Shown piece after piece: positions 20,362 to 54,990 of a stretch of DNA of 64,000 nucleotides. Location: NCBI GenBank assembly GCA_037447605.1, contig CM074813.1, positions 2,170,001 to 2,234,000 on the forward strand, read 5' to 3'. Position 1 is the first letter of the stretch; each line of letters starts with the position of its first letter. Source of the DNA: Zygnema circumcarinatum SAG 698-1b (Eukaryota > Plantae > Zygnematophyceae). The notes under the pieces were generated by a model that made no database searches, was not told where the DNA came from, and saw only the letters and a list, made by a program, of their open reading frames with translations. A program made the position numbers and the translations under genes.

Positions 20362-21192
20362 GGGTAACTCTACTGCACCCCCGCGTTTTGTCTTTCGCAC
20401 CCCCATTTTGAAAATTTTTCCTGCCCGTTTTGGTTACCCCCCCAACTTTGAATATTTCGGGAAAAAATATTTTTCCCGCCCCTCCCGTCCCCTCCGCTCC
20501 CCCCCCTTTCTTGCGCTGTCCTCCCCTCCCCTCCTCTCCCCTCCCCTCCCCTCCCCTCCCCNNNNNNNNNNCCTGCCCTCCCTTGCCCTCCCCTCCTCGT
20601 CTCTCCTCTTCTCGGTTTGCAATGTCCATAAAAATGCTACCAACTGAGTATGAGACCCGCGATGAGCTCGTACAAGTCGAAAAAATGTTCCAATTGCAAG
20701 CAAGCAGGCCACAACTTAAGATCTTGCCTTAATTAGGGGGTCTATGATCCCAACCTGAAAACAGAGAGTAACAGTTGCCCAACATTGGTGACCTTTTGCA
20801 GCTGCGTTTAAGGCTGCGTTTTTTGTGCTTAAGCTTAGTTAGTTTAGTTTTTTGCTCCTAGTTTTTTTATTTTGTGCTTGGTTCATTAGCGACCAATTCC
20901 TTGTGGTTTCCATGTTGGCTTTGTCCATGTTTATTTGATGGCCTCACCATCTTGAGACCCAATGCAAATCCCCTTTTCTTTTNNNNNNNNNNGGGGAGGG
21001 GAGGGGAGGGGAGGGGAGAGGAGGGGAGGGGAGGACAGCGCAAGAAAGGGGGGGGAGCGGAGGGGACGGGAGGGGCGGGAAAAATATTTTTTCCCGAAAT
21101 ATTCAAAACTGGAGGGGTAACCGAAACGGGCAGGCAAAACTTTCAAAAGGGGGGTGCGAAAGACAAAACGCGGGGGTGCAGTAGAGTTACCC
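20362..21192 (+). mobile_element. Mutator-like (MULE) non-autonomous element X1
   Basis: ~200-bp TIRs starting GGGTAACTCTACTGCACCCCCGCG; exact 9-bp TSD CCGTACAAA at 20353-20361 and 21193-21201; internal CCHC zinc-knuckle remnant; two assembly gaps. Confidence 0.9.
20662..20736 (+). pseudogene. C-terminal zinc-knuckle remnant of a MULE transposase
   Basis: Reads MSSYKSKKCSNCKQAGHNLRSCLN*, a C-x2-C-x4-H-x4-C motif as at the C-terminus of MuDR-type transposases. Confidence 0.65.
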
Positions 21193-21387
21193 CCGTACAA
21201 AAAGGTGGTTTCGGCAAAATCGGTGCGAATTTATTGGTGACGCACTGTTGAAGGTGGAAAATATGACGAGGACCCCCTGTAGTAAAGTACGTCTAGTACG
21301 GCTAGTACAAATACAGTACGGTAGGGGGTCCTCATATTTTCCACCCTGGTTCCGGCCAATATGAGGCGAAAATATTAATTTTGCATA

Positions 21388-22642
21388 GGGTAACTCTACT
21401 GCACCCTCGCGTTTTGTCTTTCGCACCCCCCCATTTGAAAATTTTGCCTGCCCGTTTTGGTACCCCCCAGTTTTGAATATTTCGGGAAAAATCTTTTTCC
21501 CGCCCCTCCCGTAAACCTCCGCTACACCCCCTCCCCTGCCCTCTCCTCCCCTCCCCTCCCCTCCCTTCCCTTCCCCTCCGCTGCCCCTCCCCTGCCATGT
21601 CCTCCCCGGCCCTCCCCTCCCGCCCGCTCCCCTCCCCTCCCCTCCCCTCCTCCCCTCCCCAGCCCTCCCCTCCCTCCCTCCCACTCCCTCCCTCCCTCCC
21701 TCCCTCCCTCCCTCCCTCCTCCCTCCCTCCCCTCCCTCCCTCCCTCCCTCCCTCCCTCCCTCCTCCCCTCCCCTCCCCTCCCCTCCTCCCCTCCCTCCCT
21801 CCCTCCCTCCCTCCTCCCTCCTCCCCTCCCCTCCCTCCCTCCCTCCCTCCCTCCTCCCTCCCTCCCCTCCCCTCCCCTCCCCTCCCTCCCTCCCTCCTCC
21901 CTCCCCTCCCCTCCCTCCCTCCCTCCTCCTCCCTCCCTCCCTCCCTCCCTCCCTCCCTCCTCCCTCCTCCCTCCCTCCCTCCCTTGCCCTGTCCTCCCTC
22001 CCTCCTCCTCCCTCCTCCCTCCCTTCCCTTCCCCTCCGCTCCCCTCCCCTGCCCTGTCCTCCACGGCCCTCCCCTCCCGCCCGCTCCCTCCCTCCCTCCC
22101 TCCTCCCTCCCCGGCCCTCCTCCCTCCCTCCCTCCCTCCCTCCATCCCTCCCCCTCCCTCCCTCCCTCCTCCCTCCCCGGCCCTCCCCTCCCGCCCGCTC
22201 CCCTCCCCTCCCCTCCCCTCCTCTTTTTCTGGACATTCCACCCCCCTCGTTTTCTCCTTTTCACTATTGACTTCCAACAATGTGCGACAAAAGAAAAGGG
22301 GATTTGCATTAGTCTCAATATGGTGAGGCCATCAAATAAACATGGACAAAGTCAACATGGGAACCACAAGAAATTGCAAACCGAGAAGAGGAGAGACGAG
22401 GAAGAGAGAGGGGCAAGGAAGAACAGGAGCAGGAGGAAGGAAAGAGAGAAAGCAAACTTGGAGAGAATCCGAGGAAAGAGACAGGGCAAGGAGGCGAAAG
22501 AAGGAAAGAGAAGAGGAAGAAAGAAAGGAAGGAGCGAGCATTTTCCCGAAATATTCAAAACTGGGGGGTACCAAAACGGGCAGGCAAAATTTTCAAAAGG
22601 GGGGTGCGAAAGACAAAACGCGGGGGTGCAGTAGAGTTACCC
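21388..22642 (-). mobile_element. Mutator-like (MULE) non-autonomous element X2
   Basis: Same TIR as X1 (GGGTAACTCTACTGCACC...GGTGCAGTAGAGTTACCC); exact 9-bp TSD TTTTGCATA at 21379-21387 and 22643-22651; internal sequence is inverted relative to X1. Confidence 0.9.
21530..22230. repeat. ~700-bp polypyrimidine (CCCT/CCT)n low-complexity tract inside X2
   Basis: Almost only C and T on + strand; source of the spurious Pro-rich and Gly/Arg/Glu-rich ORFs. Confidence 0.95.
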
Positions 22643-25600
22643 TTTTGCATATATAAGGTTCGTGTTACGAATAGACGGGCGGTATTATGTTAGAGTTCAT
22701 GTTGGACCGTACGTATCGTACCTTACCATATTGTACCGTATCGCACTGTATCACTTAGCATCGTATCGTATCGCGACATATCGTGACGCATAAGCGTAGT
22801 TTTTAGGACTATGTTGTTCGTCTCATTGATGATGCTATAATTATCAATAGTGGAAGAGCACACCCATGATGAAATAAATGAGTGAGTTAATATTGGGCTG
22901 GGGGTTGACGGGCTTCCACGGCAATGAAACAAAACTGGGTGTCTTGTGCGACTGAGAAGACGCTCAATACCAAAACACCTCTTAAAGTCAATATGCTTGC
23001 TTGTAGATGGTTCATGTGGATGGTATATGGACCAGATGTAACAACTGACGGGCTAATCCCCTCAGTCGTGTGCGGAAATCGCCCAGTCTGCGGTACGTTG
23101 GTTGGATGACGACAGTCATCCTCGCCCCTATGTAGTATCGTATCGGGGAGTTTCGTGTCATATCGACAGTATCGTATCGTATCGAAGTCAAGAAGACGGG
23201 GAGAAGATTGAGCGCCTCTTACGGCGGCACGAGCGGGGAGATTAGGTGAGTTTTGCGTAAGCCCGTAACGGCTAGTACAGATAGACGGATAGTACGGGCA
23301 GTACGGACAGTACGGCTAACACAAGTTACCGTACAAAAAGGTGGTTTCGGCAAAATCGGGGCGAAAATATTGAGGACGCACTCCTTAGGGTGGTAAATAC
23401 GAGGACCCCCCACTGTACCTCATATACATTTGTACGATTATGTACGGATGGTTGAGTAATGAACAAATTGGGAGGGTGAGAAATGAACAGTCGAGAGAGG
23501 GGGGGAGAGTGGGAGAGGCAGAGGGAGAGGGAGAGGGAGAGAGNNNNNNNNNNGGGGAGGGGGAGCGGGAGAGGGAGGGGGAGCGGGAGAGGGAGGGAGC
23601 GGGAGAGGAAGGACGAGAAAGGAAATATGAGCGGTAGGAAAGGCGTTGGCGAATATGTTCGGAGTGGAGCGTGAAGGGCAGCTGAAGGGCTGTCAGATGG
23701 TGCGCAGCTGACCTCTCTACTGCTCGCTGCAATACGTCCACAACACCGCAAACAATTGGCTGCTGAGACGTGTCTTTTGCTGCTCGCCATTACACCATGA
23801 CACCGCTCTAGTCTTCATAGTACACGCTATCGGACACATAATTTTTTGTCAGAGCAAGCTCACATGATTCGGAAGTCAAACCTAAGTCATATCCGATGAC
23901 ATTGACAGTGACAATTGGCTGTCTCCTATAGTATGACCTCTAGCAACAGCATCTGCCAGTAAAATTTAAACTGGAAACTAGCACTCAAGCGGTTCGATTA
24001 GTCCCAAACGCCAAAAAAAGCAAAGACTTCCTCCATGCATTGGAATTTGACCATTGCGAAAAAAAAAAAATCATTTTCTGTATAGTAACTTAATATGTGC
24101 TACCTTTGGTCACTCATTTTGTTTGCAACTTCTGGGAGCGAATAACCATGAGTCTGTTGTATCATTCCAAGCTGGCCATTTATTAGGAGGCTCCTATATC
24201 CTCCATGCGACTCATTGGAAAGGTTCAGTATCACTACATTGCAATAAGAAGCCGCAAAAATTCACGAAGTGTTTTAGACCATCTAAGATAAGAGGTGCAA
24301 AAAGAATAACGCAAGGGATAATAATGCAAGAGAAGAGAGAGGATATGAGATGCTCTTACCTGGAAGCGCACTGTGAATGTCGGTGGTCTTTCAGTCACAT
24401 GGAAAGGTAATTGATTCAATGCCAGTTCAACGCGATTCTTTCTTGCTGTCCAAGAGCGGAGTGTGGGAACACCTCTCTCTGCAGGCGGACAGGATGCATA
24501 AGCCCACTACGCTGTGGTTCATCGCTTAAAAGTTGCTCTTTCCGAATCTTTTGTGAGCGTCTTGTGGCTTACTTTTCTCGCTTGGTTTTTTTTTCTTCCT
24601 TTGCTCCCCTTTCTCTCTCCTCCCAGCGCCCCCACTCCCCTGCCCCCTCAAGGAATTGCATAATAGAGCAAAGGACCCCTAGTTGCAAATGAAAGACAGA
24701 CATGCAAATAAGCAAAGCCTTGTTATCCGGAAAAACTGTATCGGGGAAGTGGGGAAGGAGTTGGAATTTTTTAGAAAGATAAAAAATATGGGGCAAAGCG
24801 TTCACCTCACAGCCGAGGCGGTCGAGTATTTGAAAGTGTTTGACTGAAACATATTGCTTTGACAGAAAACTGTGCTGGAGTTTAAGAAGGTTGCATCCGA
24901 CATAGTTCGAGAGGAATACCTTCCTTGTGTTCAATTTGAACCCCTGTGTTCCGTTTGGATTGTATGGCGTTCAAACTGTTGTTGCTTGAACTTGTACATT
25001 GCGATGAAGACATCAACGTTGTGGAACATTGGAGCTCCGTAGAGAAGACTTCAGTTGTATCTGCATATAGATGAATTGATATTCTCGAAGTTACTGCGTA
25101 TGCACCGAATCTGCTGCCAGTTTTTTGCGTATAAGAAAAGAAATAATGGAAGCAGTGATGACTGTGATGATCGCAGTGAATCGCTTTCATGACAAACTTA
25201 TGGCGTCCTTATTGCAAAGTTTCGATTCTACTCTGGAAAATGCGAGACTTGACGAAAGGTGTGTCTGTATTCACAAGAAGCAACAGAGTCCCATTCCATT
25301 CCCTGCAAAATCTGCGTTCAATGCAGACAGGGGTCATGGCTGTATCCTACAAACCATGTGATGCAGAGCTGGTTCTTATTGCTCGTAGGTGCATTAAAGT
25401 GACTGCTGTCACCCATACTATGAAACTCCTTTCTGTTTCGCCGACTTGAGTGGTTTGTTCAATAGTCACCCGTTTAAGTGTGTTGCATTATATATCATTT
25501 GATGTGCAGGATGGAAGTCGAGATCTGATAGGGAGCCAAGCCTTTGGGCTAAAGCTGTCTTGGTTGCACCCAGCGTGCTGGTCGGACCGCTCATTGGCGG

Positions 25601-27050
25601 CTAAGTCGGCCATGCAATAGGGGGTCGGTCCCAACTTGGAAGTAGAGGAAATTCGGGGGAAAGCAAGAAGAGCAAACCACGGTCAATTGGGCGAGGGGCA
25701 ACAGTTCAGAAGTTGAAGTCTTCCTCCAGCGGAAGCGGGGATAGAATAGGGCTTTTACCAAACAACAGCTCCGAGTTAAAGATGGTGAGGTTCAGACACT
25801 GACCACCTCTAGCTTAGCTTGGCTTTAAACAGGTGTCATTTTTTGCCTATGCGGATAGCTTTATTGTTTGGCTGACAGGTCAGGATGAGCGAATGCTTTT
25901 TTTGGGACAGTATAGACACGTACGTGGTTAACTGTTCAAGTTTTTGTCTTGTACCGGAACTTGGGCTTGTCCTTTGCATCACCCATCACTCACACTTCAC
26001 TGTTGTGCGTTTTCCTTTGGCAATGTTTTGAATGATCAGATGTACGCCAAGACCTGAAGATGGGAAGTGGGAAAGTTGCTGCACAATGTGCACGCGAGTC
26101 GCTGCCCTTTTTCTCAATGCTGAACTTAACAGAGGATAAAACCCTGGGACTGATGTTGTGGCATTCGAATTCGCATTCAAGTTTTAGTATCCCCTATGTT
26201 GAAATTCTCTGTTGTTATTGGAGGTGTGGAAAATCACAGATGCGGCGGTTGGAATATATGGAGACCTTTTCGCACGGTAAGGGCACAGTTGGGGAGGCAT
26301 GCTGAAAATTGTGGAGTGATACGAAAACGAGGGGGGAGAGAGCTCTTTCGGACGCATTCCTTACTGGCTACCAAAGGACGTACTGTGTTGATTTCAGTGG
26401 AATGGAAAATGGGTTGGTGATGGAGAGGTGGTGGAGCTGCTGTTGCAGGAAGCTGGAATGCGAAATTGACCGCCTACGTTCGGAAGGGTCTTGCTTTTCT
26501 TCCGAATGTGGGAGAAGATTGATTCTCCAGGAGGTGTTCTTGGACCATGTGGAAACTGTTGCTTCGCAGAAGTGAGCTCGTTTGTGGACTGTACAGGCTT
26601 CGCTTCTCATAGTCCTGCAAGCCATTACGATGGCAACGGTCAGCTCCCATCTGTCACATTAAAGGTCTCAAGTGGCCCAGCAATATGGTAAGGCTGCCTC
26701 TAGGAATGGGACGTCGTCTATGGGTAAGGCCACAACCGCAGAGTCTCAAGAAGATTTGGTTGCCAAGTAACGCCACTCAACAATGGGATGGAGCAGGAGG
26801 ATCTCACCGCTTTGCCATTCTTGCCAATCCTGAGGAGACCGTTTGCAGCAGACATGTTTGTATGTAGATTTATCTGCTCCAATACAAGCAGACAAAACAC
26901 CATTCGTAGCATTTCAGATAGTATTTTTCAAAAGGTCTACACTGGTTTAAGAGCGGTAAGGTGAAAAGGACCACAATTCAACACACATGAGAGCAACAAG
27001 CCGTGCCTATGAAGGCCGATCAGTTCAGAAGTACCTTTGCTTCCCATAGC

Positions 27051-27099
27051 GAGGAAGGGTTTGTCGCCATGACATTGCCATGGCGACAAACCCTCCCTC
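27051..27099. repeat. Near-perfect hairpin
   Basis: AGGGTTTGTCGCCATG-ACATTGC-CATGGCGACAAACCCT: 16-bp perfect stem with a 7-nt loop, extending to ~21 bp with one mismatch. Confidence 0.85.
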
Positions 27100-27869
27100 T
27101 GACCTCTCACTCCCTCCCTCTGACCTCCCTCCCTCAACCTCTGCCTCCCTCTAATTTTCCTTTCTCTCCGCTCTCCTCCGCAACGGAGAGAGTCAGCCTG
27201 TGAAGGGAAAGGACATGCGTACGGCACACACTGTACGGTCATCCTCCCCTAGCCCGACCGACATGACCGACCGTGCTGTACGGATATCCTCATTGCAACC
27301 GTGTAGCGTAACGGAGCTGCGTTCGACGGATTTGCGTCAGTTCAATTGTACTTGACGTATGCCTCTTCCGTGTCACGGATCAACGGAATCCAGGAGCTGC
27401 CAACGGAGATTGCGAGAAGGCGGCGCCATGCGTTGGCGGCCCACGGAACAGCACACCATCCAGCAAGGCGCACTCGGGAACACCGCCTAAGGCCGCCGAT
27501 TATCATTCGTTGACCTATCCGAAGGCTCCACGTAGTCANNNNNNNNNNCAGAATCCCTACGTCTTCCGCTGCGCGTACCTCTGAATCCCCCGGATCCTGG
27601 CTCTATGCTGCAGGCAGACCCACAGCACCACCCCAACCCTACGTCAGTTTCAGCACGGACGCTCGGGTGGCCGTACAGCATCTGCGACTAGCTCAGCAAT
27701 CTCCTTTTAACCCCACTTATCTTGTGCTACAACCGTTTGTGTACGGCAGTTCGTACGACGATATCGGATCCCGTACGGTACGGTCCTCCTCCTCCTGAAT
27801 GGACTGCTTGGAAGTCGCCCTCCGCCGCCCTGGAAACAGCTCCGCCCTCTTCGCTCGGCCCTGCGCAGC

Positions 27870-28739
27870 GTACAGCTGGCTGCAGGCTCTTGGGGAAGGC
27901 AACAGGCTGGAGCATGATTGCTGACGAATATTTCAATGTATAGGCTCTTCGGCAAAGACTGGAAATCCTACTAAGAGGTGAGTTGATGCTCGTTCTTCGA
28001 GCAGACATGTATGGGCTTACATTTCTCTGCTTTAGTCACTTCTTGCAATTTGGACTTGGGCATGGCCCACAATTACCTTTTTTGGAACGAAAAGATTGTA
28101 ATATAAGAGGGAGGCGGTTTGGTTTTTCGCAATTTGCAGCAGCTCGCTCTGGACGACGTCCTCATAGATAATTAGCTTCAGCATGTGTTCATGGGAGTTA
28201 AAATTAGCAGCTTGAGATTATTGTTTTGGGTCTCTTTTGTTCATCATATTACCTTCACTGGTATTCAAGTCCCTGACAGGGTTCTAGTAATTTTTCCCTT
28301 GAAGAGTTTCTTAGAGCATAAGGTGCATACGCTGAGAAAGTAGTACAGTGAATTTTTTGTATACTCCCGTTTCTTCTGCGGCTATGCTTGCTGTTTAAAA
28401 AAATTGAATGCGCAATAGTATCGTTCAACATTGAAGTTAAGCGTGGACATCAGTGCATAGCGATGGAGGAGGTCGTCAACTTTTTGTCCGACAATACTTT
28501 TATCGTGAAATACGTCTTTTTTAGCTAGCTACACCAGGATTGCGAAACAATGCTCTTTGTTAATTTTGAAGACATGGCCCTCCCTACAAAACAAACTTGA
28601 TATAAACAAACTTAAGCATACAGCACGCCAAACTACGTATTCGTTTTCCCGGTGTTGTTATGGTACGGCAATAGTCCTCTGAACATTTTAGGGCCTGGCA
28701 GTTATGAATTTTTGCAGTTCTGTTGACAGGCTGCTTGAG
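27870..28739 (+). promoter_or_regulatory. Putative PRT6 5' leader exon and leader intron (27978-28729) with two short uORFs
   Basis: Donor AG|GTGAGT at 27978 and acceptor TTGACAG at 28729, 10 nt before the PRT6 ATG. uORFs MIADEYFNV* (27914-27943) and MYRLFGKDWKSY* (27936-27974). The transcription start is unknown. Confidence 0.45.
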
Positions 28740-31700
28740 ATGGAGCCTTCGTGGCACTCTTCTCCTCGGCTGTCCACTTCAACTTTGCAGGTACTTGTCA
28801 TCATGTCGTACTTCTTGAGTAGCTTTCTATTTAAAACAAGGTTGCAGAGAGCAGTCTTATCCCAGTGAGAAGCCTGTCAGGTGATCACTATTTTACTAAT
28901 GCATTTGTTTTCATTGTGGCTTCTTTTGAACGAGTATTCCTTGATATTCAGAAACCAGCTTGTGACTCAAATTCATGCTTGGAGGGAGATACCCAGTTAA
29001 AAGATCTTATTCAGTTGCACAAGGTTCATGCCAAATAGCGGTTATCTGTTTGACCCAGTTTGCATATTCGCTTGTGGACCCTGTTTGCAGAGGCTGGCCT
29101 CTCTTCTCCCTGCCCGGTCCATCGTAGGAGGTTTACCATCTCTGTACTTGCATATCAAGGCGCAGCCTGATCTTGCAGACGAATTAGTTCGAGCTGTTCT
29201 TCTTGGACCAAGCGATGCAAGCGAGAGTCCCTCTATTCTTCAGGCGGAGTATGAGGAATCCATGGAGTGTGTGGAGTGGCTGATCTGTGGGGGCAAACTG
29301 CCAGATGCACTTGTGGCTACAGGAGTACTGCCAAAGGGGGTTGCTCAAGGAGGCGTTTGTGGGAACGTGTGGGGCCCCAACGACATCGCATATCGTTGCA
29401 AAACATGTGAACATGATCCCACCTGTGCTATTTGCGTGTCATGTTTTCAAAATGGAGACCATGAGGACCATGATTATTCGATGATTCGAACCGGGGGTGG
29501 TTGCTGTGATTGTGGAGATATAACTGCTTGGAAGAGAAGTGGGTTTTGCAAACGTCATGGGATCCCAGATATAGCTCCGCCACTTCCGCAGGCATTTGTG
29601 CATCATGCTCGACGAATTTTGGTGGTGCTTTTGAAGGCATGGGTAGACAAGTTAGGGGCCATGGAAAGGCACGTGGGAATAACGGCAGCTGCTCAGACAA
29701 AAGAGCAAAAGGAGGCCAACGAGATGACTAGCGCAGTTTGTCGGAAGCTGCTTGAGCTGTGCAATATTAGTGAAGGCTTGGTGAAGCTGATTGCGAAGTT
29801 GGTAGCTGATACCTCACTTGGCATTCTTCCCATGCTGATGCGTAACGAGAATGTGTTTTCAAGCCGTAGCATAGTTGCTACCCATGCCCTTCTGTACAAG
29901 CTACTGGGAGTTCCTGAGTTCAAACAGGCATTTGCTGTAAACTTCCTTGCTCACTATCCGAGCTTTCTGAAGGATCTGGAAGATGACTCAGCCTTTGCGT
30001 CCCATGGCCAGTCCATGCTTGACAATTTTTCGGTGCAGATTTTTACGGTGCCATTCCTGACACCCGACCTTGTGGCCCGAGCCGGCTTGCTTGACATGCT
30101 GCTCGGTGCCTTTAAGGACGTTTTGTTGGCTGCAGCCGATGGAAACGGACGCATCGATGTACGTTGGTTTCTCTGCGTTAGTCACCCTTCGTCTTGCCTA
30201 TGCTAACACCTGCACAACAACACAAACTCAACATGCCACATGACTACTTGAATTTATGTGCAATTGGCCAAATGCATTGTCAAGGCGCTTGCAAGAGAGA
30301 TTCGGCATCGGCTTTACAGAGCATATGAAGAATGCAGTAGGCATGTCCTCTAGTTTAGGTTATGGCTAGGAGTTGTCCGGTATAAGAGGCCATCATTATG
30401 TCATTTCGTGTATCAATTTGTTAAGAGGCATTTAAGCTAGGTCAACTAAGCGAAACTAAGGAAAGCTAAAAACCCATCGAACAGCCGTTTCATATTGGCG
30501 AACTTATCTTACTTTGTGACTGCATCTTGAAACATTACAACGCGTATATGCTTTGTTTTGACGCTTTCTCAATGTGCATTTGTTAATGTTATGTAGACGG
30601 GCAAAGTAATTGGAAGCGCAAAGCAGACGCGAATTACAGGCGACTTGCGCTATGTGTTGAGCCATAAGGAGGCGGCTCGGTTTGCGGCATGGCAGCGGGA
30701 AGACCTTCTCTTGGTCGTGCTTGAACTTCTCGCGTATGTGCAGGGAATGTGCCCACAGAAAAGGATGATTCATGCGCATTTGGAGCATGAAACTGAGGAC
30801 TGGGGTCACGCGTATCTGTTGGAAGTGCAATTGTCTGTTCTTCACCCTCTCCTTGTTAGGGGAGCAGCCTGCGTTGAAAATGAAGAGAAGTGGGTTGCGG
30901 AATACAACAATAGAATTGGGATCGATGAAGATGTGCATAGCCACGAGGTGCACATGGAAACGAGGAAGTCTGCTGCCGAAGGTGGAAGAATTGGAATTCA
31001 GTTAGGTAGAAGATATTCCACAGCTCTTGGTGGAAAGGCTGCTTTGAGACAGGAGGAAAGTGATAGACAACTTCCGGATACAATTCAGGAAAAAGGGGGC
31101 TACGTTTCCGGACGAAGTGCTGACGATGTGAAGATAAGCGAATTGCAAATGCAAGGAAGCTTCCCTAGTTTAGAATCTCCTTATGTCATCCTGCGAGGTG
31201 TAGCTGTGCCACGTGCATTGATGAATTTCTTACATAGTTGCATACGAGTGCTTGTGGCTTGGATCATGATTGATTCCCATGCCATTCAGAAGCCCCCACC
31301 GGACAAATTCTGGATTTCTGAAGGAGGTGGTGGAGAAGCAGTGCGAATATTGGCTCAGACTGAAAACAGTAATGAGGTGCTTTCTGGTTTGCAGGAGTTT
31401 GAAGCTTCATGGAAACTAGAGACTAAGCACAAGAAGCCTATCTTTGCCCCTGAAACATGCAATTTTGAACATTGGCAGGCGATATCGTACGACGTTTCCA
31501 AAGAGGAGATATCCTTCCATCTCCCTCTTCACAGACTGTGCTCACTACTGTTGCATACAACATTGGAAGCCTTCGGTCTGCCTGTCCAGATAGAAGAGAA
31601 AGAAGATCTTTTGGATCGGGTCTTTGATGGTCTCGAATCTTCTTCACCTGCCGATGAACTAGCATCCAAAACCCTCAGTGTCGATAAAGATGCTGGAAAA

Positions 31701-37700: not shown

Positions 37701-40700
37701 TGTTAGCTTCCGAAAGCAATTTCCTCCTCGTGTGCTAAACCCCCTCTGAAGGAGGACCTGTGCTTGCAGGCCGCGAGGACGGAGGGCGGGCCAACCAGCC
37801 ACCGACATCTGTCCCAGAAGGCGACTTTACGGCATTTTGGCAGCATGCAGCGGAGCCTGTTCTGACGACAGATGCCTTCGCAACTCTGGCGAGACTTATC
37901 TTCTGCCTGCCCGACGAGGAGGACTTGCAAGGAGCGTTTCAGGGATTAGTTCATCTCGTGTACCTTATCTGCGTTGTTCAGGTGTGTTCACTTTCTCTCT
38001 CCCTCTCCCTCTCCTTCTCCGTCCCTTTCCCCCTCCCTCCCCCTCTCCCTCCTCCCTCCTCCCTCCCCTCCTCCCTCTCCCTTTCTTACTCCCCCCTTCC
38101 CACTCCCCCCTCCTCCCCTCCCCTCTCCCGCCTCCCCCCTTCCCTCTCCCCCCTCCCCCCTTTCCTCTCCCCCTCNNNNNNNNNNCCCCCACCTCCCTTC
38201 ACTCTAGCTCTCCCTCTCATGTGGATTTTCTTTGCTTTCTGTAGGTCATCGCACGCTTGGGACGTCATCTTGTGGTGGACAAATCCATCCCACCGCGAGT
38301 GCGATGGCTGATTGGCTTCGTGCTCTGCTCAACAATGGACCTCCCCGTTTGCTCCGTTTCAGAGGACTTAGTTCCACTGCAGCCGCACTGCAGTCAGTGG
38401 TCACATTGGATCCATATTCACACCTTACCTTTCCTCCGAAGCTGTGTCCTCCTCCAACAGCTCCTTTTCGAAAATGTGGAGCTGTTTGTAAATAAAGTAT
38501 CCTTAAAAGGATCAACTCTTTCTCTACATCGTTCACCTTCAAACGCTCAGTCAGTGCTCCAAACTCAAGCCCAATCAGATGTTCGGGTCGGGTCGAGTAG
38601 GCTGTCTGAACCTGCTCAGCAAAGCATCCTATCGGGGGGAGAGAAGAGAAAAGCTTTATGTTCATCGACTTTATCCGAAGCGTGCCCTTCACTAAGGTCA
38701 GGCTCTCATCTCCCTCGCTTAGACGAGGGACGTGCCGATCTCCCTTCAGCAAGTGTAGTAATTGACGAATGGGGAACTTCAAGAACGCCGGCTGCCCTTG
38801 CAGCCATGACAGTGGATGGCCCATCTCCCCAGAGTGTGAAAGATAGGCCTCCCATCTCCCCTATAGCGCTCTCTTCCAATGGGGTTGACTGGAGAGCAGA
38901 GAAACTTCAGACTGACGTGCAGCTGCAAGAGTTTCAAGTGTGGGAGCGAGCATTCAAATTGCCCCCACTTGAAGCCCTGCTGTCCGATGAAGGGACATGG
39001 ATTTTCATTGCAAGGTGGTGCCGCCATGCAGTAGAGAAGTCGAAGAATGGCGAACTGCGAGAGCTGGTCACACCGGGGCCGGCATCACCATTTGCACTTA
39101 CGAGGCTGCCTTATCGATTCCATGAGCTTTTCCAAAGGTGGGTCTCACATAGGCCATTTCGTTTTAGGCTCTGGAGTTGTTCACTTTCTAGACGATGCGT
39201 CGAACTCACTAAACACTAAAGATGCTGTTGGTGATGGGTCTCATATTGTTGTTTACGTATTTTGTGCGCTTCTGTTTTGTTCTTTCCTTTTGGTTTTCTG
39301 ATGTTTTTTTTTGCATTGTACATCATTTCTTTTTCATTTTGTTCCTGAACATAGGTATGTGAGGGAGCCATGCGTCTTCTGCGGATCCATTCCTGAGCAG
39401 CCTGTGCTCTGCCTCTTTTGCAATGCCTTCTTTTGTGGTGCTCATTGGTGAGTTGTGACTTTTTCACTGCCCCTTGCATCTTAAGGAACGTTTAAGGGAC
39501 GTCAGTGGATGACGAAGCGAAAGGTTTCACTGCTCTATGCTGTCCATTCCCTGCATGTATTGGTTCTGCTGGTGGTTCTAATGTGGTAACCTTCGTGTTT
39601 TCTTACTTTGCTCTTTGAAGTAGCAAGAACACATGTCTGTTGGGGGGGAAGAGCTATGTGCCTTAGAGGTTAGGTAAAGTAACGTTGATTCAAGTATATC
39701 TATGTTTCTCTTGAGCTACAACTTTCGTAACTTGGAAAAGCAATTTCTTTTCAGTTACCTTCAAGCAGTAGCACCTGTAACGGAATCTTCTCCTTACTTA
39801 TGCCCTAAAATTGGGAGAAGAAGCTTCTTTAGAATTGTTTGGAAATCGGTAACTGCTAGTTTAGTTTTGGCATGATTGGACATAACTTAAATCATTTGAA
39901 GACAGACAGACAGTGAAGAGGAGCATGCAGGAACAGCATGGGTTTGTTTGCATGTACTTATACGCCAAACTAGGTATGGGCTCTAAATTTCCACCAAGGC
40001 TCGCATGTTTCTCAACAGGGACAGCGCGAGGAGGAGCCGCAGCCAAGGAGGGTGTGGAGAGGTCTATTCTCACGCAAAGAAGTGTGGGGGGGGAACGGGA
40101 GTTTATCTCATGCTGCGGGTATGGACTGTACTCGGAATAGGAGTCCTGACGAGCTTCTATGATGCAGCTGACTGGACTTTTCAATCTTGTCTTCCCAGAA
40201 TGTCTGTCGATGATCAAGCAACTCTTGCATGCTCAACCTTTCTCGGAACTTTTTTTCACTCTGTCTAACTTCACTTCCTTGTATAAGTCGGTGTTCTTGG
40301 TCGAATCTCCGCACTTATCATTAGATTACCGGATTGAGGAGTTTTCTTTTTGGAATTGTTGAACGAGCAATATGAAGAGTTAGTCAAGTATCGTATGTGA
40401 GCTGTTGGGTCCTGTGTGAGCCTTTGCAGAGGACGACTGTGCTCTTGTTGCGTGAGGAGAGATATGCCATGTGGCCCTCGCCGTACTTGGACGCCTATGG
40501 GGAGGAGGATGAAAATCTGCGCAGGGGCAAGCCCTTGTTTCTCAGTCAAGAGCGCTATGCGGCACTAACTGCGCTGGTCAGTTTCTCTCTTTGGCACTTT
40601 GTCGAGCGGCTATGTGGGTTTCGAAGGGACTCCTATTTCATGGATGGGTTCGAGTGAGTCTCTATGTAATCTATGCATTGGGATACCGTGTTAGGGTGGC

Positions 40701-46070: not shown

Positions 46071-46778
46071 CTTGTGTTCCTTCATGTTCATATCTCCGCC
46101 ACATGCTATCGCTAGCGATGTCTGCATCATGGACATGCATCATATCCGAAATGGACAATCACGTTTCCGTCCGTCGCTCTCTCGCATCTGCTTGCGGATG
46201 GGAGGCACCAAAACCCTGTTTTCCAAGATCGGATATAAGAGAAAAAAACACAGAAAAAGCTTTGATGCAACGAAAACGGCTGACATTTGCAAGAAAGAGC
46301 AGGAGGCTGCCTGAACGAGAATCCACGGCTGAGATATAGAAGAAAAGAGAAGGGACAACGGGGGGATAGGGGGGAGAGAGAGCGAAAGAGGGACAAAGAG
46401 GAGGGAGCGAGAGATATGCTTTGGAATCCGAATAATTGAAAGCATACCGTAACTAAGGCAGGTATTCCACTAGGCCTCGGTAAGCTCTGGCCCTTGCAGC
46501 CGGAGAACGAACTCACAACTATGTGCTAGTTGTGCCGCATCTAATCGCACGGGACAAGGCGAATGAGAACTGGCTATTTCCTAACCTGTAAAGCGAAATG
46601 GACCCTTTCAAGAGCTAAGGTACTCAGAACCTCTGTCATCGCCCTCTGCTGGCTCATTTCAATACCTCACTTTACTAAGAATACGGTCGTAAATGACATG
46701 AGATCTTTCTCACTCAAACAATTAAGACTATCACTTCCCATTCACTGCGCGATTCCCAACAATGTCTAGAGTTTCTGT

Positions 46779-48729
46779 CTACGCCCAAGCTCGAGTTTTC
46801 TTGACCAAGTCTCTTGTGTCAATGAGGTCAATCTTCGCCGCCAAAATGAAGTCATTCATAGTTACTCCTCCTGCACAGAATAACTCAAACGCCTCTCTGA
46901 AACCCTTCCACTGGCCATACATACAATGAATACGGAATTTGATGAAACACCCTGATCTTTACAGAGCAGGATTCCATGTGTTGGCAGCAGAGGAGGCGTG
47001 TATTCACCTGTAGAGTGGCTGTAAAGGTCGACAGTCGCTCGATTCCAACCCTCGAGATGAAGGTCCGGATGATGGTTCTCCTTTTCCGCAACTTCTGATA
47101 TTCTCTTAAAGAGCTCGAGGCCTGACACAAAGTCTTTCATCTTCCACTCTCCCCTAAGTCGGATTGTGCCATCCACCTCAGCCAGCTTCCAGCCCACAAC
47201 CTGACATGCACCAGAAGTAGCAACTTCGAATGAAATCCAACCCACTTGCTACCATTCATAAAGAGTCATCTTTTTAGACAAGTAACTTATCAATAGTCGG
47301 AAGGCTTTGAGCACTGTTGCGGCGTATGTTCCTATCACAAAAGCAGAAAAAGGAGATACCCTTTCACCTCCGTCATAAAAAATACTGAAGGAGATTTATC
47401 AATTACCATCTTGTGCCAGAGAATGCCTCGTTACTTCCTCCCACTTGAATAATGCTTTAGGAGTGCCTTTGGAGATTGGCTGGAGGACGATCAAAAACGA
47501 ATGCAGAGGCCAGTGCTAGGGCTACTAGAAGCTAAGTACCTTCCGAAGAAGCGCTTTTGCATCATCAAAAGACAACATAGGCGGCGCTTCACCAGATGTC
47601 TGGCAACTGTACTGAGCAAGCCCAGTAATTTCTCTGCAAGGTTCGAGCCAAAAAAACGGTCATTTAACCTCGCAGATGATAACCGGCACATAGAGCATAC
47701 CAACGTCGAAAACAAGCTGGCAGCCGCAGCATGCAAACTAAAACCAAAATGAGGAAGACGTAGTTCCAAACGCTTATTCATTTGGCCAAGATCTTTACAT
47801 GTTGCGGTGCAGTTTTTCATTAGCAGGAGTCTTGCTTCAAAGATGCTGCACCCACACAAACGCTCTAAAACCTAATAATGAAATCCTCAGTACAGGAAAA
47901 CCATATCTTGCCCTCCGGCAGTAAAAAAAAAAAAGTGGCTTAGAAGGACATCCAGGGAAACCTTTTACTTTTTCCAGGAGAGCGCAGAATAGGATCGGGA
48001 ACATTTGAAATTCTAGCAAAAAAAAATTATCAAAATGTTTTGCCAAAGTGTAAAAATGCCAAAATGTATATTCTGAAGTCCAGTTACAATTCTAGACAAC
48101 CTAGTTCTCGCCAGGTTTCAGAAATCGTGTTTGACAATGTAAGGTGTCCTACATTGATCAGTTCTGTCAAAATTCCGCCCTGTCAAAATTAAGTCGCATG
48201 AGGACAAAAAAATATGGACCATCTTCATACCGTCTCCATTTTGCCATAGGGGCAAAATGGAGCCAATGACAAGGAGGGAGAAAAGGAAGGGAGAGGGAGG
48301 GAGGAAGGGAGCGGGGGGAAGGGGGACGAGCCAAATAGGGAAAGGGAGCGAAATGTGGGAAAAGGGAAGGAGGGAGGTGGAAATGACGGACTGGAGGAAA
48401 GCGCTAACGGTAGAAGAAATGAGGATAAGAAGGAGGGCGGGAGCCGCTGACCTGACATTCGCCGGCAGCAGAATCCGATGCTCCGTGTCTGCCATGCCCA
48501 GAGGCTTCTCTCCGAAACCGGAGCCTATCTCTCCGGGGAAGGGATCCCTCGCTCCCATTGAGCCCAGCGGGTCGCGCTCTGCCGAGGCCCAGCAGGTGCC
48601 GCGCGGTCTCCCATGGCGCGCCCTTAAGGGCAGCGATCCATGGCGGCGATCGAAGGGAGCGTGAGAGGAGGAGAGCTTCGCCACGCTGTGGCTGGCAGCC
48701 AGATGAAGGGAAGCACTGCAGGCAGCCAT
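46779..48729 (-). CDS. RAF2: Plastid pterin-4a-carbinolamine dehydratase-like protein, RAF2/SDIRIP1 type (4 exons, 218 aa)
   Basis: Exons 48729-48452, 47633-47540, 47200-47008 and 46870-46779 (657 nt, in frame). Ser/Ala/Arg-rich transit peptide, RAF2-type segment GARDPFPGEIGSGFGEKPLGMADTEHRILLP, PCD domain, and C-terminal NDFILAAKID..RAWA* as in recalled Arabidopsis At5g51110. Confidence 0.9.
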
Positions 48730-49098
48730 GGCGGCTGGGAAGCAATGAGGGAGGAACAAGGACCTTGGAGGGGCTATGCAAAAAGCGCTGCCACGGATCG
48801 TTCCATGCGGACAGCGTTACACTCTGTTCCTATCTCCGTTGTACAAAGCACGAGTGCGAGTTTCCATGCCCTTGTTCCTGTTTCAGTTTCCCCGTGACGT
48901 TGCAAACCAGTTCCATTCGCATGAATCTCTCCTTTGCGAGTGGTTGGTTCCTCGTGGTTCCCCAGTTGTGTACCGCGTTCTCTCTATAAGTAATTGGCGA
49001 AATTAGACAAAACACAAGCTCCTAGAAAAATTTGATGTTTTTCTTTTTCGGCAAATAGAGAAACCTCACGTTCCAAACTAGGACAATAACGCGGTCCC

Positions 49099-49320
49099 TG
49101 AGCTACCTTCGATGGCCTCTCTCGCCATCGTGAGACCAAAAGTGCCAAATTCTCTTGCCTTCTTCCACCCCTAGACACGTTTCCATTCCAACGTCCCCAC
49201 ATGGTGCGTGCCAGTGCAGGCAAAGCCGCCGGTATTCAAAGGAGGAAAATGGCATTGAACTCACGATGGCGAGGCCATCAAATGTACATGGACAAAAGCA
49301 GCATGTGGAACCACGAGGGA
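49099..49320. repeat. Short inverted repeat plus MULE-related dispersed motif upstream of RAF2
   Basis: TTCGATGGCCTCTCTCGCCATCGTGAG (~49099-49135) is the inverse of CTCACGATGGCGAGGCCATCAAA (~49260-49283); the right arm continues into the motif shared with 410-490. Confidence 0.65.
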
Positions 49321-50637
49321 AGGGTATTCAAAGGCTCTCGTTTGTGAGTGAGCTTGCATGGATCGGCTATTGCGCTCACACGACGGGTCTGGCGAACAGC
49401 TGGCTCTATGACGGGTCGGCACATGGGTACCGTACGTTCTACAATCGGTTATGTCCTGTCTAGGGTTAATTCCTGATGACTGCACACCGCTCATAGTACT
49501 GTAGTTTGTGTGGGCAGACAAATACTGTGGGCACGCAACTACTGGCTGTCTTGGGCCAACTCATGCCGCAATTTAGAGTGGGCTGTTTACGAAGTTTATT
49601 TTTATATGAGAGAGGATCTATGGGTATGTGTATAGGAAATACTCATTTACATGAGCCGAGGTATCGCTATGATCGATGGACAGTTGTGAGACACTGAGCG
49701 AGGTTCTAGCACCATTGCAAGTTTGCTGCCTCCAGTTTGCAATTCCAATCGGTCAGTTTCGACCCGTGAGTGAACTTCAATTGAAACTATCTGGTCAATA
49801 GTACGCGATTCAATAGCTGAGTGCTTTGTTGTCATGTGCTTCTTTTTAGTGCTAAAAAACCCGGAACGGAGGGAGAGGAGGGCCAGGAGAAGGAGACAAA
49901 AACATGCGATATTGTAAAAAATCAATAATAAATTTGCCCTTCAGGATCCGAATCACTATCGATCGGTTCAGGACAAGGTTAAGAGATATCCGTATATTGC
50001 AATTACATGATCTTCAGGAGCCGGATCCGTGGCGCACTGGCGTCAAGGTGGAACTACAGTTCAACAAAAAACCCGACGTTTCTAAGTCGATTTCTTTATC
50101 CCTTGCATCTCCAGCCCAGTTGCACAGCGTAAGCCTGAACTGCGCTAAGCGTAAAAAGCTGTTGCCTCTGCTTTCATGCAGTACATTGTGAAGCCCATTG
50201 AACTAAATACACTCAACCTCCAAATCACAGTTGCGAAGCGTCCTTCACTTGCAGAAGGATGTCCCACGAAGCGCGACAAGAGAGAACAACAGAACAAAGC
50301 TGGAGAAGAGGGAGTAACGAATCATCTGCTGTACTGTACTGTCAGCTTGGATATCCTGCCAATCAATCTTCCACCTTCAAAATTGGAACTATAAGCGGGT
50401 GCACTTGTGCCAGGTAGACAATAGCCCATCTGCAGGGAAGTAAAGTGCAACCTTTGTGTGTGAGGGAAAGAGATAGAGACACGCACGACGGGACAGGAAA
50501 AGGAGGGAGAGAGGGGAAGGAGAAGAAAAAAGGGATAATGGAGAGGAGGTGCAGACGAGAAGAAACGGTGAAAGAAGGGGCAGAGGCAGGGGGGGGGAAG
50601 GGGGAAGGAAATGGAGCCGGAAACGAATATGAAAGAG

Positions 50638-50794
<157 letters not shown>

Positions 50795-50926
50795 AGGGGT
50801 GGGGGAGGGGAGGGGGGAGAGGGGGGAGTGGGAGGACAAGACAGAAAGTTGCATCTGTCACAGGAAGCAGTCTAAGCCACACATAAATGCAGAGGGTTCG
50901 TCTCGGATGCAGCCATGCACGAAACG

Positions 50927-51490
50927 TCATCCCAATTGCTGTTTCCAACTTGAAACTATGGTTTCAAAGTTGACAGGAACTCTGCGTGGCCTTCGCACGC
51001 AGAGTGAAGAACTCAAGATTGTTCCAGGATGAACGTATTTGACTGTTACTGAATATCAAAGCATTCTTTATTCGCACTGGGCATAACTGCAAAAGCAACT
51101 TACACCATCCACAAGCAGAGGACTGTAGTGATGGCGAGCGTCATGTGTAGCCTGCAAACACAAACAAGAAGGTAAGCAAAGAAGAAGAGCGGGTGGGGCA
51201 GCGAAATCAAATTCTGCACCGCATGAGCCTCCTTTCAAAAGCAACAAGAAGCCTCCTGCAGACTGCAGAATAAAAAGGGGCAGTAGATCGACATTCTGTG
51301 AGGATTGCACCTCCAAACAATCAATAGATACTTGTAAGGTCAAATGACCTCATACTGGTAGCTGATACGCGCAAGACAATGCGGACACTTACAAGCTTGT
51401 AGAGGGACTCTTCTTGCTGTAGACGCGGGCTCCAACTGCTGCGAGGAAGCCAATCGCAAAGAATAGAAGTGACGTCGTAAAGAACTTCAT
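50927..51490 (-). CDS. 78-aa microprotein with two hydrophobic segments (4 coding exons)
   Basis: Exons 51490-51393, 51255-51220, 51151-51104 and 50981-50927 (237 nt, all GT-AG, phases 2/2/2 consistent) give MKFFTTSLLFFAIGFLAAVGARVYSKKSPSTSLRLLVAFERRLMRLHMTLAITTVLCLWMVVPVNFETIVSSWKQQLG*. Confidence 0.65.
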
Positions 51491-52977
51491 CTTTCACTCT
51501 CTCCGGAAAGACAATTCAACGCTTTTTTGTGAAATAGGATCAAGGGAAACTGATATCCCTGCAGGAAGTTTGAAGCTCCGACAGGAAGGACAAGCTAAAG
51601 CAGGTATTATACTATCCGTTCAGATATATCTATCTATTCACGACGGCAAAATTAATTGAAAGTTTACGCAGCTTGATCATGCAAAGCAGACCCAGTGGCA
51701 ACGGAGGAGAGCTTGCCCTAAAATGAACCAGCAGCCTCCACCTTCCAAAGCGGGCAAAAAGCTCCTGCCCAAAAATTGGCCCACTGCTGAACGGGCAGCT
51801 TTTTAAATTACTATTCCATTCCCCACTGACCGATAAAATGTTTGGAGCAGGCGTGGCCGTCCGATCAAAACAATCGACCGACAAAATTTCGCCCGTACTT
51901 ACAAGTACAGAAACAATTTCCTTCCTTTTTTATTTCAATGTTTCTTCTTACTTTTCTGACCCTTGGAAGCGACCCTTCCCCTCGGAGGCTCCCAAGCTCC
52001 CGGTTGGACCAAAATGGCCTCTCCTGTACGGCCCTACGAAAGTACGGTCCTATAACGGAACAGTGTACGGCACCCTTCCCATGCGCAGCGGAATAACTGT
52101 TGTCAAACTGTCAGCGCATGGAACCGTTCGCACTGGCCTCGCTGGTCTCTCCCTAGTCGCTGAAGTCCTTCGCGCCCAGTTCCTCGTGGTTCCCCATGAT
52201 GATTTTGTCCATGTACATTGATGGCATCATCGCCATCGTGGGATCAATGCCATATCTTCCCCTTCTAAAAGTTATAATGAGGCCTCTCTCGTTTTTGAAA
52301 AAAGTTTCAGGCCGCAAGCGATCACCCAACTTCATAAAACTCGACCAGGCCAATTCGCCACCAAGGAAACTCTTATTCAACTTATTGAACTCACAGCCAG
52401 GAGAAGGCTTCACTTGCTGCTCTAACAAAAAATTCCCGACAGTATGACCTACAGAGTTTGAAACCCGCGTTTGAAACAGAGTCTCGATCAGAGTACTTGG
52501 CACAAGACAGGCTGCTTTACTGAGGATTGATGGATCTGAAAGAATAAAGAATGAAAAAGCACGTCTGCTGCTACTGCTGCTGCTGCTGCTGTACTATCCT
52601 TCTATTAGGCTTTACAGAGTTATAGACTTGGAGAACAACAGCATCCTTTTCCAATCAACCAAGCCAAACGAAGGGCCCAGGATCGAAGAAATTCTCGTCC
52701 GTAGTGCCGATTGTTTGTTTCAAGTCTGGTCGTCTTGACATGTATTAACTCTCCATCAGTCAACAGGCGTCGTTATCATTTCAGGGGAACCACAAGGTCA
52801 TGTGCTGCTCCGTCCCATCACCCCCACACCAAAGCCATCAGTACGAAGCCGGTGAACTTGCAAGCATCTTGGCTTTCAGATGCATGCTTTATCAGCAGCA
52901 TACATCGCACTTGTCTGAACGACGCAGAATAGACAACTTACTGAAGCTTCACAATGCCACAAGCAGCGTTGTTCAAG

Positions 52978-54990
52978 TCAGGAAGCCCATGTACAGGCAG
53001 AAGAACATGTGCGGACACTGAAAGCCAATGCCGACCCCTCAGCAAAGCCATGACCAAACGCACCTTTCCACTCCCAGACAACACGCGGCAGCCCGTCCAC
53101 CTTGTGCTGGTAAATAGCTATCCGAGAGTCTTTTTTAACCAGCAGCTCCACTCGCTGCCAGACTTCTCTCCTTCCTCGCTGCTCTCGGAGGGAAAGGAGA
53201 GTATCCCTGAGATGGACTGCGACTACCCGGCGCATCGCAGTTTCCTTCGCTTGAGCACGACTCAACAATTCAATGCAAATCTGCCCTCCCACATGGTACA
53301 ATATACTTGCTCAGTGTGCTATTTTAATGAGACGCTTTACTTTCTGTATTCTGCGACAAAGCTATCCTAACACCTGTAATCTTCTCACACGGTCCAGCTG
53401 AAATTGCAACAGACTTACTGCCAGCGAAGCGTCTTTAAGACAAGCAATTGCAGAAACAAAGCATGTCTCAACCGATCCACGATGCAGCACATCATACCTG
53501 ACTCGTGTCGAAAAGTTTAGCCAAATTCGCAACAACTTCCTGATGGTTGGTCCTTCCTCACTAAAAGTTACCAGACGGCCTGAGGGCAGGGGCTTTATGG
53601 GAGCTAGGAAACCTTGTCACTTCAAAAGAGCTGTGGCGAATAGACTCACCTTTTCATAAATTTCTTCCGCTCGTCTCTGCACCTTCCGATTCTTCCAAAG
53701 AAGTCGCATCAAGCACATCGCAATTATAGTAATGAAGACAATAAGCAGAAAAAATGTTGGGTTGGACGTTATCCAGTTGCGAAGGTAACAGCTGAAGCGC
53801 GTGAATATCGGCACTACATCGTGTGGACATCGAAACTTCACCTCCCCAGTTTCAAGGTCCTCTTCACGTTGCAGTATCCTAGCTACTGCATGGAACGCCT
53901 TCTGAACCACAATCTGCTGCCGGGCCTCCGGACTCAAATCTCCCGTATCATATCTTTCCTTTCCGAGGCTTACTTCTGTGCTCCTACCCGTGGCTTCCTC
54001 TTCACTCCAGACCTGACCATCAGCCGCTTTCAAAATATCCATGGAGTTAACAAATTCGGCCTCCCCACAGAATTTACTCCGCTGTGCACAAACAAAATGA
54101 AACATTTTCTGTTCTAATTCCTCCACTTCTCGCCTCAAGAACCGATCCGGAATACAGCGGCCAAAAGACTTCTGAAATCCGAATTCGCAATGAAAGGATT
54201 CCTTGGAGCAAGACGCGTGCATTGGACATGGCTTGCAGTGACTCAAAAAGCCGATACTGTTTAAGGAATCCGGCAGCCAGGAAACAGTGTGACTCGGACC
54301 TTCACAGTAGGGCTTCAATAACATCCTTGATAAAAAGATGATATTAAAACGAACAAAATATGCTATTGCGATGAGCCCAGCAACCCTTGTGATGACCAAA
54401 ACAGCCTCTGCTGCTAGCTTCGAGCGGCGCAAGAAAGTGAAAGTACCAGCAGGACGTTTCTTTTTTTTCGAAGAGACTTTCGACTGGAATGTATTGCCAG
54501 CACTCTGGATATTCTGCCAGTTGTCCGACAACCTTTCATTTAAGGATGCAGATTTCTGCTCTTCACAAACTTTCCTTTTGTCCATCGCACATTCTAGAGC
54601 TCCTTTAGCTTCATTTCCTTGGAAGGGTGAGGAAACAGAATTCAAGGAAGAAAGGCGCCCAGCTCTGTAGCTTTTCGGACTACCTCCACGTGACGAAACG
54701 GTTTTTGGCGGTTCAGAATTTAATCCCGTTTTCTGACTTCTGATGTCGACGTTTACAAGAGGACCAGCAGCAGTAGCAGCAGCAGCAGTCTGTTCTAGAA
54801 CAGGCCATCCCGGTGAGGGAATGGCTGTGACGCCCACACCATATGCAGAGGAGAATAGAGGGGGCGAGGAAGGGCTACAGCTCGATCCTGAAATACGGAT
54901 AGGTTCAGAGGGAGTAGCCTCAGAGTCCGCGCGATCGTGTCGCTGGGTTAGATATGGAGATTTATTAACGGAGAACGGTTTCTGCGCCAT
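52978..54990 (-). CDS. MAN1: Inner nuclear membrane protein MAN1/Src1 (MSC domain)
   Basis: Exon 54990-53651: low-complexity N-terminus, TM1, Cys-rich luminal domain (CKPCPMHASC..C..GFQK..GRCIPD), TM2, RAEEIYEK. Exon from 53283: ICIELL..VHLRDTLL..WQRVELLVKKDSRIAIYQHKVDGLPRVVWEW (winged-helix MSC). The C-terminus may splice to a further exon ending near 52395. Confidence 0.88.

Follow-up and report, generated by a model that had tools for sequence, protein, structure and literature searches.

RAF2 proteins of plants are type 2 members of COG2154 (At5g51110 of Arabidopsis, GRMZM2G139123 of maize, and Cre01.g049000 of Chlamydomonas). Each combines a leader, a GARDPxP...TEH module, the fold of pterin-4-alpha-carbinolamine dehydratase (PCD), and a C-terminal [FVA]WA. 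According to a review, RAF2 is needed for the accumulation of Rubisco and binds both RbcS and RbcL, which is known only from maize, Arabidopsis, and reconstitution in E. coli. RAF2 is usually called an inactive PCD in the literature, even in the context of Chlamydomonas, where what precisely it does in Rubisco assembly has yet to be settled. Here we describe a gene with the same architecture in a 64,000-nucleotide stretch of DNA from Zygnema circumcarinatum SAG 698-1b (contig CM074813.1, positions 2,170,001 to 2,234,000; hereafter, the window, whose numbering we use). The gene lies on the minus strand, and its coding sequence runs from 48729 to 46779. We propose that it is a nuclear gene for the chloroplast protein RAF2, orthologous to At5g51110 and to maize RAF2, with a whole PCD signature, which is the ancestral state. 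We put the probability of this reading at roughly 0.85.

The coding sequence has four exons and comprises 657 nucleotides (nt), or 218 codons plus TAG. The parts of the protein that identify it are as follows.

48565..48729, minus strand: presumed chloroplast transit peptide, residues 1-55 (9 Ser, 10 Ala, 7 Arg, 5 His, and only 3 acidic residues)
48469..48555, minus strand: N-terminal module of the RAF2 clade, G59-L87, GARDPFPGEIGSGFGEKPLGMADTEHRIL, which aligns with the module in every RAF2-clade protein
47015..47086, minus strand: codons of the catalytic-signature residues E163, H167, H168, P169, W176, and H186

The leader of about 55 residues is rich in Ser, Ala, and Arg and is not conserved in the clade alignment, where conservation begins at about residue 57. 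The module, with the motif G-A-R-D-P-x-P-x-E-x-x-S-x-F...(D)T-E-H, precedes the PCD domain. The protein ends in ...KKTRAWA before the stop, which fits the clade's basic stretch followed by [FVA]-W-A.

We then examined the PCD domain. Exon 3 alone matches the Pfam family PF01329 (Pterin_4a) with E = 2.7e-14, and exon 4 extends the profile to positions 75-89. Exon 3 also matches the NCBIfam models for 4a-hydroxytetrahydrobiopterin dehydratase, with scores under their cut-offs. The closest solved structure by sequence is the Thermus DCoH protein (PDB:1uso; E = 1.6e-7), and exon 3 had no sequence match to a plant RAF2 structure in the copy of PDB that we searched. We checked for the signature of active PCDs with the regular expression [EDKH]-x3-H-[HN]-[PCS]-x5,6-[YWF]-x9-[HW]-x8,15-D, which is said to come from Naponelli et al. 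2008. The window protein matches it exactly, as E163-KEN-H167-H168-P169-DLHLEG-W176-NRATVDLYS-H186-STGGVTMN-D195.

To compare the protein with its relatives, we ran database searches with exon pieces and with stored relatives; the spliced protein of 218 amino acids was used only inside scripts. A word search with the exon-3 part of an open reading frame (ORF) from the window returned four fragments only, and a database-wide search with exon 3 returned 998 relatives. A profile word search from nine full-length relatives, together with a Sphagnum word search, supplied proteins with source names. The 173 RAF2-clade proteins and the sets of 19 algal and 20 land-plant sequences that are discussed below are yields of these searches, not a designed survey, and hornworts, Physcomitrium, and most ferns are absent from the sample. 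In the alignment, the clade is sharply bounded by a non-conserved leader, a G-A-R-D-P-x-P...E...F...T-E-H module, and a C-terminal [FVA]-W-A. The N-terminal module and the WA tail are common to the window protein and the 173 fetched proteins; the aligned type 1 and bacterial PCDs are without the RAF2 N-terminal module. Source names among the clade members include "RAF2" (Auxenochlorella) and "pterin-4-alpha-carbinolamine dehydratase, chloroplastic" (Selaginella, Lotus, Typha, Ricinus, and others).

Phylogenetic analysis placed the window protein within this clade. A quick tree gave a 47-row clade with all 46 RAF2-type rows and a support of 94 by the Shimodaira-Hasegawa-like approximate likelihood ratio test. 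In a careful maximum-likelihood tree (66 rows, LG+C20+F+G4), the support for the RAF2 clade is 97/94 and its internal order tracks the organisms, with Mesostigma and Chlorokybus grouped together, chlorophytes next, and streptophytes after them. Within a 29-row streptophyte set (98/99), the sister of the window protein is a protein from a transcriptome (P0292), and Spirogloea muscicola follows; the window protein adjoins the land-plant group (100/98). Judging from the sequences, the source genome is that of a streptophyte alga that groups with zygnematophytes. The type 1 proteins form a separate clade (91/81) that is labelled by its source names: Elaeis ("mitochondrial"), Araucaria, Mesotaenium, Closterium, and Klebsormidium subtile. 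There is also a Spirogloea row. This clade includes zygnematophyte rows, so zygnematophytes have both paralogs.

Could the window protein be a canonical mitochondrial PCD (type 1) that was taken for RAF2 in error? Its motif is complete, and it is 52% identical to the type 1 protein from Mesotaenium in a local alignment of 111 residues. But type 1 proteins are without the N-terminal module and WA tail of RAF2, both of which the window protein has, and the window protein lies inside the RAF2 clade in both trees. Furthermore, the approximately unbiased test rejects a clade of the window protein with type 1 (difference in log likelihood of 42, p = 0.0035). We reject a type 1 identity, whose probability we consider to be close to nil. 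A preliminary description of this locus, made from the sequence alone, had named grouping with type 1 as the alternative to look for in a tree. That description had recognized the plastid type 2 (RAF2) clade from the GARDPFP...TEHRIL segment and the RAWA end, which agrees with the tree and with the presence of the module and the tail. It had also reported a complete PCD catalytic motif, and residues 163-195 indeed match the expression.

We then asked how widespread the intact signature is. It is present in full in 68 of the 173 RAF2-clade proteins. Among named organisms, its state is as follows.

Chlorophytes: complete in 14/14 named RAF2s (Chloropicon, Pycnococcus, Chlorella, Nannochloris, Auxenochlorella, Coccomyxa, Trebouxia, Botryococcus, and others)
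Klebsormidium, Chlorokybus, and Spirogloea: complete
Mesostigma: deviates at the first position only (N for E/D/K/H)
Sphagnum (three species): complete
The lycophyte Diphasiastrum: complete
Gymnosperms (Ginkgo, Wollemia, and Cryptomeria): HHP, H, and D kept, including all three histidines, with G in place of the aromatic residue
Liverworts (Marchantia, Riccia, and Calypogeia): decayed
The moss Ceratodon: decayed, fully degenerate
Selaginella: decayed
The fern Adiantum: decayed
Angiosperms: decayed

Because the signature is complete in 14/14 named chlorophytes and in 3/4 named streptophyte algae, the intact site is the state from which the RAF2 clade started and one that is still common in it. 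The "inactive PCD" form of angiosperms, which is without the histidines, is therefore derived. The preliminary description had also suggested that the intact motif may be ancestral, and its statement that angiosperm RAF2s lack the histidines of the motif is confirmed as well (for example, Eutrema reads GHYPSLHLENPTQVRAELSTASIG). On the other hand, it had implied that the gene is unusual, which is not supported, since green algae, Sphagnum, and Diphasiastrum also have the intact motif and gymnosperms come close to it. It had conceded that the motif would not be novel if it were documented across RAF2s from non-seed plants. The motif does recur across them in the sequence data, but it is not universal, as Ceratodon, the liverworts, Selaginella, and the fern have lost it. 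Keyword searches of the literature found no paper that notes the full signature in algal RAF2, but Naponelli et al. 2008 was outside their coverage and may describe the algal state. The window gene is an ordinary algal ortholog of RAF2, and its intact motif is no peculiarity.

How often was the site lost? The minimum number of state changes on the gene tree is 3, and the branches that pull the decayed land-plant sequences together are weakly supported (22/0 and 72/69). We read this count as a lower bound, and it may be an artefact of parallel relaxation. In the accepted organism tree, the mosses and the lycophytes are each monophyletic. On that tree, the sequences imply that the histidine triad was lost at least five times separately: in bryopsid mosses, liverworts, Selaginella, ferns, and angiosperms.

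Two sets of sequences have unusual forms. In P0036 and P0307, two streptophyte-type RAF2 relatives that were assembled from public runs, HHP, H, and D are kept, and a short insertion (LVAGQTTNATVD) replaces the segment with the aromatic residue; this is another route to a broken signature. Sphagnum has a second RAF2-like paralog (P0088, P0171, P0283, and P0285) whose PCD signature is intact and whose N-terminal module is partly deleted (FGTRDTFPEEHNSM). This paralog is without the WA tail and ends in KKKS.

We also compared the constraint on the site between 19 algal and 20 land-plant RAF2s, which were grouped by taxonomy and not by the state of the motif. In the algal set, only 28 of the 161 mature positions are invariant, and five of them (H167, H168, P169, H186, and D195) belong to the seven positions of the signature. 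Of the remaining two, position 176 is always Y, W, or F, and position 163 is E in 17/19. Among the land-plant proteins, positions 168, 176, and 186 vary widely. Six positions in the N-terminal module (G59, R61, E67, F72, T82, and H84), as well as P89 just past it, are invariant in both sets. Algal RAF2s therefore hold the RAF2 modules and the catalytic site at once. Scores against a bacterial PCD model (NF002016) follow a like gradient, at 102-115 bits for type 1 proteins, 83-94 bits for RAF2s with an intact motif, and 48-64 bits for RAF2s with a broken motif. (The NCBIfam cut-off is 133 bits, and both the motif-intact relatives and the plant type 1 proteins, which are reported to be active as a class, are below it; these models were built for bacteria.)

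As a guide to the fold, we used an AlphaFold model of P0292, the closest full-length relative (53% identical to the window protein), with an alignment of 91 sequences. In this model, the PCD domain has a predicted local distance difference test (pLDDT) score above 95, and the N-terminal module reaches only 58-78. The N-terminal module may need a partner to become ordered. The top matches from Foldseek were true PCDs, namely Geobacillus 2ebb, Brucella 3jst, Toxoplasma 2v6t, DCoH, and Thermus 1uso. The template modeling (TM) scores of these PCD matches were mostly 0.75-0.89 (normalised by target length), with 23-37% identity.

What would such a protein do? By orthology with the maize and Arabidopsis proteins, a mature protein of about 160 residues would be imported into the plastid, would form dimers, and would act after the chaperonin step of Rubisco assembly, contacting RbcL and RbcS. 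The conservation of the site suggests that it may still bind 4a-hydroxy-tetrahydropterin or an analogous folate. Whether the window protein both binds 4a-hydroxytetrahydropterins and dehydrates them is, in our view, an even bet. One possible client would be a plastid phenylalanine hydroxylase. There are reports of functional enzymes of this kind from Chlamydomonas, Physcomitrella, and pine, and not from angiosperms. (A literature search for the distribution of the hydroxylase in Marchantia and Selaginella found nothing.) For the wider clade, we tentatively suggest that the RAF2s of green algae, Sphagnum, and some lycophytes may have two functions, as a plastid carbinolamine dehydratase for pterins or folates and as a Rubisco assembly factor. 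Bryopsid mosses, liverworts, Selaginella, ferns, and angiosperms would then have dropped the enzymatic half independently. We rate this suggestion at somewhat less than an even chance.

Several points weigh against our proposal. The targeting of the window protein to the plastid is predicted from the composition of the leader and from orthology only, and the structural evidence was obtained with a relative (53% identical) and not with the spliced window protein itself. The RAF2 site of Ceratodon is fully degenerate even though its relative Physcomitrium has the hydroxylase, which also counts against a hydroxylase client. As for catalysis, Pribat et al. 2010 reportedly described, in non-flowering plants, a chloroplast-located PCD beside the plastid aromatic amino acid hydroxylase. 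Naponelli et al. 2008 reportedly tested plastid type 2 proteins from "higher and lower plants" and found them inactive. Given these two reports, a second plastid PCD activity may be unneeded. Finally, a 2021 paper on Chlamydomonas calls the role of RAF2 unclear and calls RAF2 an inactive PCD, and the literature that we searched contained no functional data for any algal RAF2.

Alternatively, the site might be kept for a reason other than catalysis, such as holding a ligand or a client peptide, or stabilizing the fold or the dimer. In that case, the algal protein would serve Rubisco solely as a chaperone and would show no PCD activity in vivo. In line with this, land-plant RAF2s act as assembly factors without the signature residues (as reviewed), and gymnosperm RAF2s retain the three histidines and have lost only the aromatic residue. 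Also, the N-terminal module is equally conserved in algae and land plants, so a chaperone-type function is probably ancient. However, residues that serve a chaperone role should not vanish in several land-plant lineages that keep RAF2. The conserved set coincides exactly with the catalytic signature that was derived from active PCDs, and the domain scores of the motif-intact proteins are still near those of active type 1 PCDs. We view a non-catalytic role for the site as a serious contender, if not quite a coin toss.

It is also conceivable that the algal protein serves chiefly or solely as a plastid PCD, regenerating the cofactor of the plastid aromatic amino acid hydroxylase, and that the role in Rubisco assembly arose later, in land plants. 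This would fit with the complete signature and the invariant catalytic histidines of the algal proteins, and with the lack of reports of the hydroxylase from angiosperms, where the RAF2 site is most decayed. Nor did the literature that we searched report a Rubisco phenotype for an algal RAF2. But the enzymatic PCDs have nothing that corresponds to the module and the WA tail, and both of these elements stay invariant all the way from chlorophytes to angiosperms. This speaks for a single conserved function, not an enzymatic one, that the whole clade shares. Furthermore, a canonical PCD is retained as a separate protein in green algae (Monoraphidium, Klebsormidium subtile, Mesotaenium, Closterium, and Spirogloea). 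The decayed site in Ceratodon, a relative of the hydroxylase-bearing Physcomitrium, may be another difficulty for this idea. We consider such a mainly or purely enzymatic role in algae to be improbable. The identification of the window gene as a RAF2 ortholog with a whole PCD signature is the reading that we retain.

The gene is real, expressed, and spliced as modelled. Its parts are given below.

48730..48990, minus strand: probable 5' untranslated region, of uncertain extent; one RNA contig spans 48452-48990, and others end at 48738 or 48678
48452..48729, minus strand: coding exon 1, from Met1 to the first two bases of Arg93, with the ATG at 48729 and a GT donor directly past 48452
47634..48451, minus strand: intron 1, 818 nt, GT..AG
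47540..47633, minus strand: coding exon 2, from the last base of Arg93 to Lys124, with both flanking joints found in four runs and the frame checked
47201..47539, minus strand: intron 2, 339 nt, GT..AG
47008..47200, minus strand: coding exon 3, which encodes the core of the PCD/DCoH domain and runs from Val125 to the first base of Gly189
46871..47007, minus strand: intron 3, 137 nt, GT..AG, which splits the codon of Gly189
46779..46870, minus strand: coding exon 4, from Gly189 to Ala218 plus TAG, with D195 at 46851-46853 and the RAWA tail at 46782-46793
46316..46778, minus strand: 3' untranslated region, with mismatch-free spliced RNA contigs that reach down to 46316-46487

Exon 1 encodes the presumed transit peptide and the RAF2-specific N-terminal module. 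For the region 46300-49300, we used four public runs from three studies, and all three intron joints are exact in the spliced contigs of 4/4 runs. The joint of intron 1 (47633/48452) is present in all four, and so is the joint of intron 3 (46869/47007, cut +1), with a depth of 183-755. The depth of the exons is in the hundreds, as compared to about 5-17 for the introns. (The label of these runs as RNA is a guess; we take them to hold spliced RNA because of the splicing pattern and the contrast in depth between exons and introns.) At the 5' end, there are four upstream ATGs within 48730..48990 (at 48922, 48916, 48867, and 48806), so the longest 5' contig may be read-through from the upstream repeat.

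One run also has a low-depth alternative joint, 47633->47799 instead of the main 47633->48452, which skips 165 nt at a depth of about 8. Such a joint is suggestive of a minor splice form or of an intermediate with incomplete splicing. Intron 1 contains a long purine-rich tract at about 48250-48420 (GGAAGGGAG-like), which is pyrimidine-rich on the coding strand. Within the introns, the runs differ from the window at 47650, 47922, and 48017, by a 2-nt deletion and by single-A insertions in runs of A; these differences are probably strain polymorphism or homopolymer errors. An Rfam search around the gene gave no match.

Directly upstream of the gene is a foldback element, or an element like a miniature inverted-repeat transposable element, at 48948-49320. 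It has nested inverted repeats (48950-48964/49304-49318, 49104-49119/49271-49286, and 49121-49139/49255-49273). Its end motif, TGGGGAACCACGAGGAA, occurs three times in the window, versus 0.02 expected, and positions 52180-52196 belong to the same observation. Many unrelated RNA contigs enter this element, with a summed depth of about 10,000-30,000 at 49229-49300. Elsewhere in the window, a long (CT)n/(GA)n microsatellite at 50445-50948 produces runs of SL or ER repeats in mechanically called ORFs, and a short run of N at about 38150-38200 is an assembly gap (XXXX in a mechanically called ORF). An uninterrupted ORF of 457 amino acids at 53617-54990 on the minus strand has Ser/Pro-rich N-terminal parts and hydrophobic stretches and may be an intronless gene for a membrane protein.

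For the window gene alone, our result is modest, as it is a normal algal RAF2. The pattern across the clade is moderately interesting. Calling RAF2 an "inactive pterin dehydratase" is apt for some land plants only. If algal RAF2s are active, then the family would be a dated and repeated example of an enzyme turning into a chaperone, and it would suggest a link between the biogenesis of Rubisco and the recycling of pterins or folates in the plastid. If they also have two functions, then the clade would offer a natural series from enzyme to pure chaperone. If they are inactive, then the published activity signature would be insufficient to predict activity.

The window protein is most similar to the RAF2s of other algae and early land plants. 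The proteins from Spirogloea (P0021), Klebsormidium (P0214), Chlorokybus (P0265), Chlorella, Chloropicon, Sphagnum (P0185), and Diphasiastrum (P0170) likewise have the full signature together with the RAF2 modules. Spirogloea RAF2 is 58% identical to the window protein over the aligned columns of the tree, and these algal and early land-plant relatives are 47-55% identical to it in local pairwise alignments. The window protein ends in RAWA and most of these relatives end in FWA; otherwise, the differences are ordinary divergence. Brassicaceae RAF2 (from Eutrema) is 48% identical. At positions 168, 176, and 186, angiosperm RAF2s have Y/F/L, P/S, and A/S, whereas the window protein has kept H168, an aromatic residue, and H186, so the label "inactive PCD domain" does not suit it at the level of sequence. 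That label describes the derived land-plant members rather than defining the RAF2 clade. Plant type 1 PCDs (Elaeis XP_010924301 and Mesotaenium P0030) share the fold and the signature with the window protein, and their domains are 44-52% identical to it, but they are without the N-terminal module and the WA tail and form a separate clade. The PCD/DCoH proteins of bacteria and animals (Thermus 1uso, Geobacillus 2ebb, Brucella 3jst, and human PCBD1/2) have the same catalytic residues and are the closest solved relatives, both by sequence and by the fold of the P0292 model (25-37% identity), but at about 80-105 residues, they are without a plastid leader and the RAF2 modules. Finally, acRAF of the alpha-carboxysome (PDB:4low), which a review reports to be without PCD activity, uses the PCD fold for Rubisco assembly, as RAF2 does. 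We considered close kinship with acRAF and rejected it: the P0292 model matches acRAF with a TM score of only 0.69-0.71, 14-15% identity, and E = 2.5e-3, far behind the true PCDs, and there is no sequence match. Thus acRAF is a functional analogue of RAF2 rather than its close kin.

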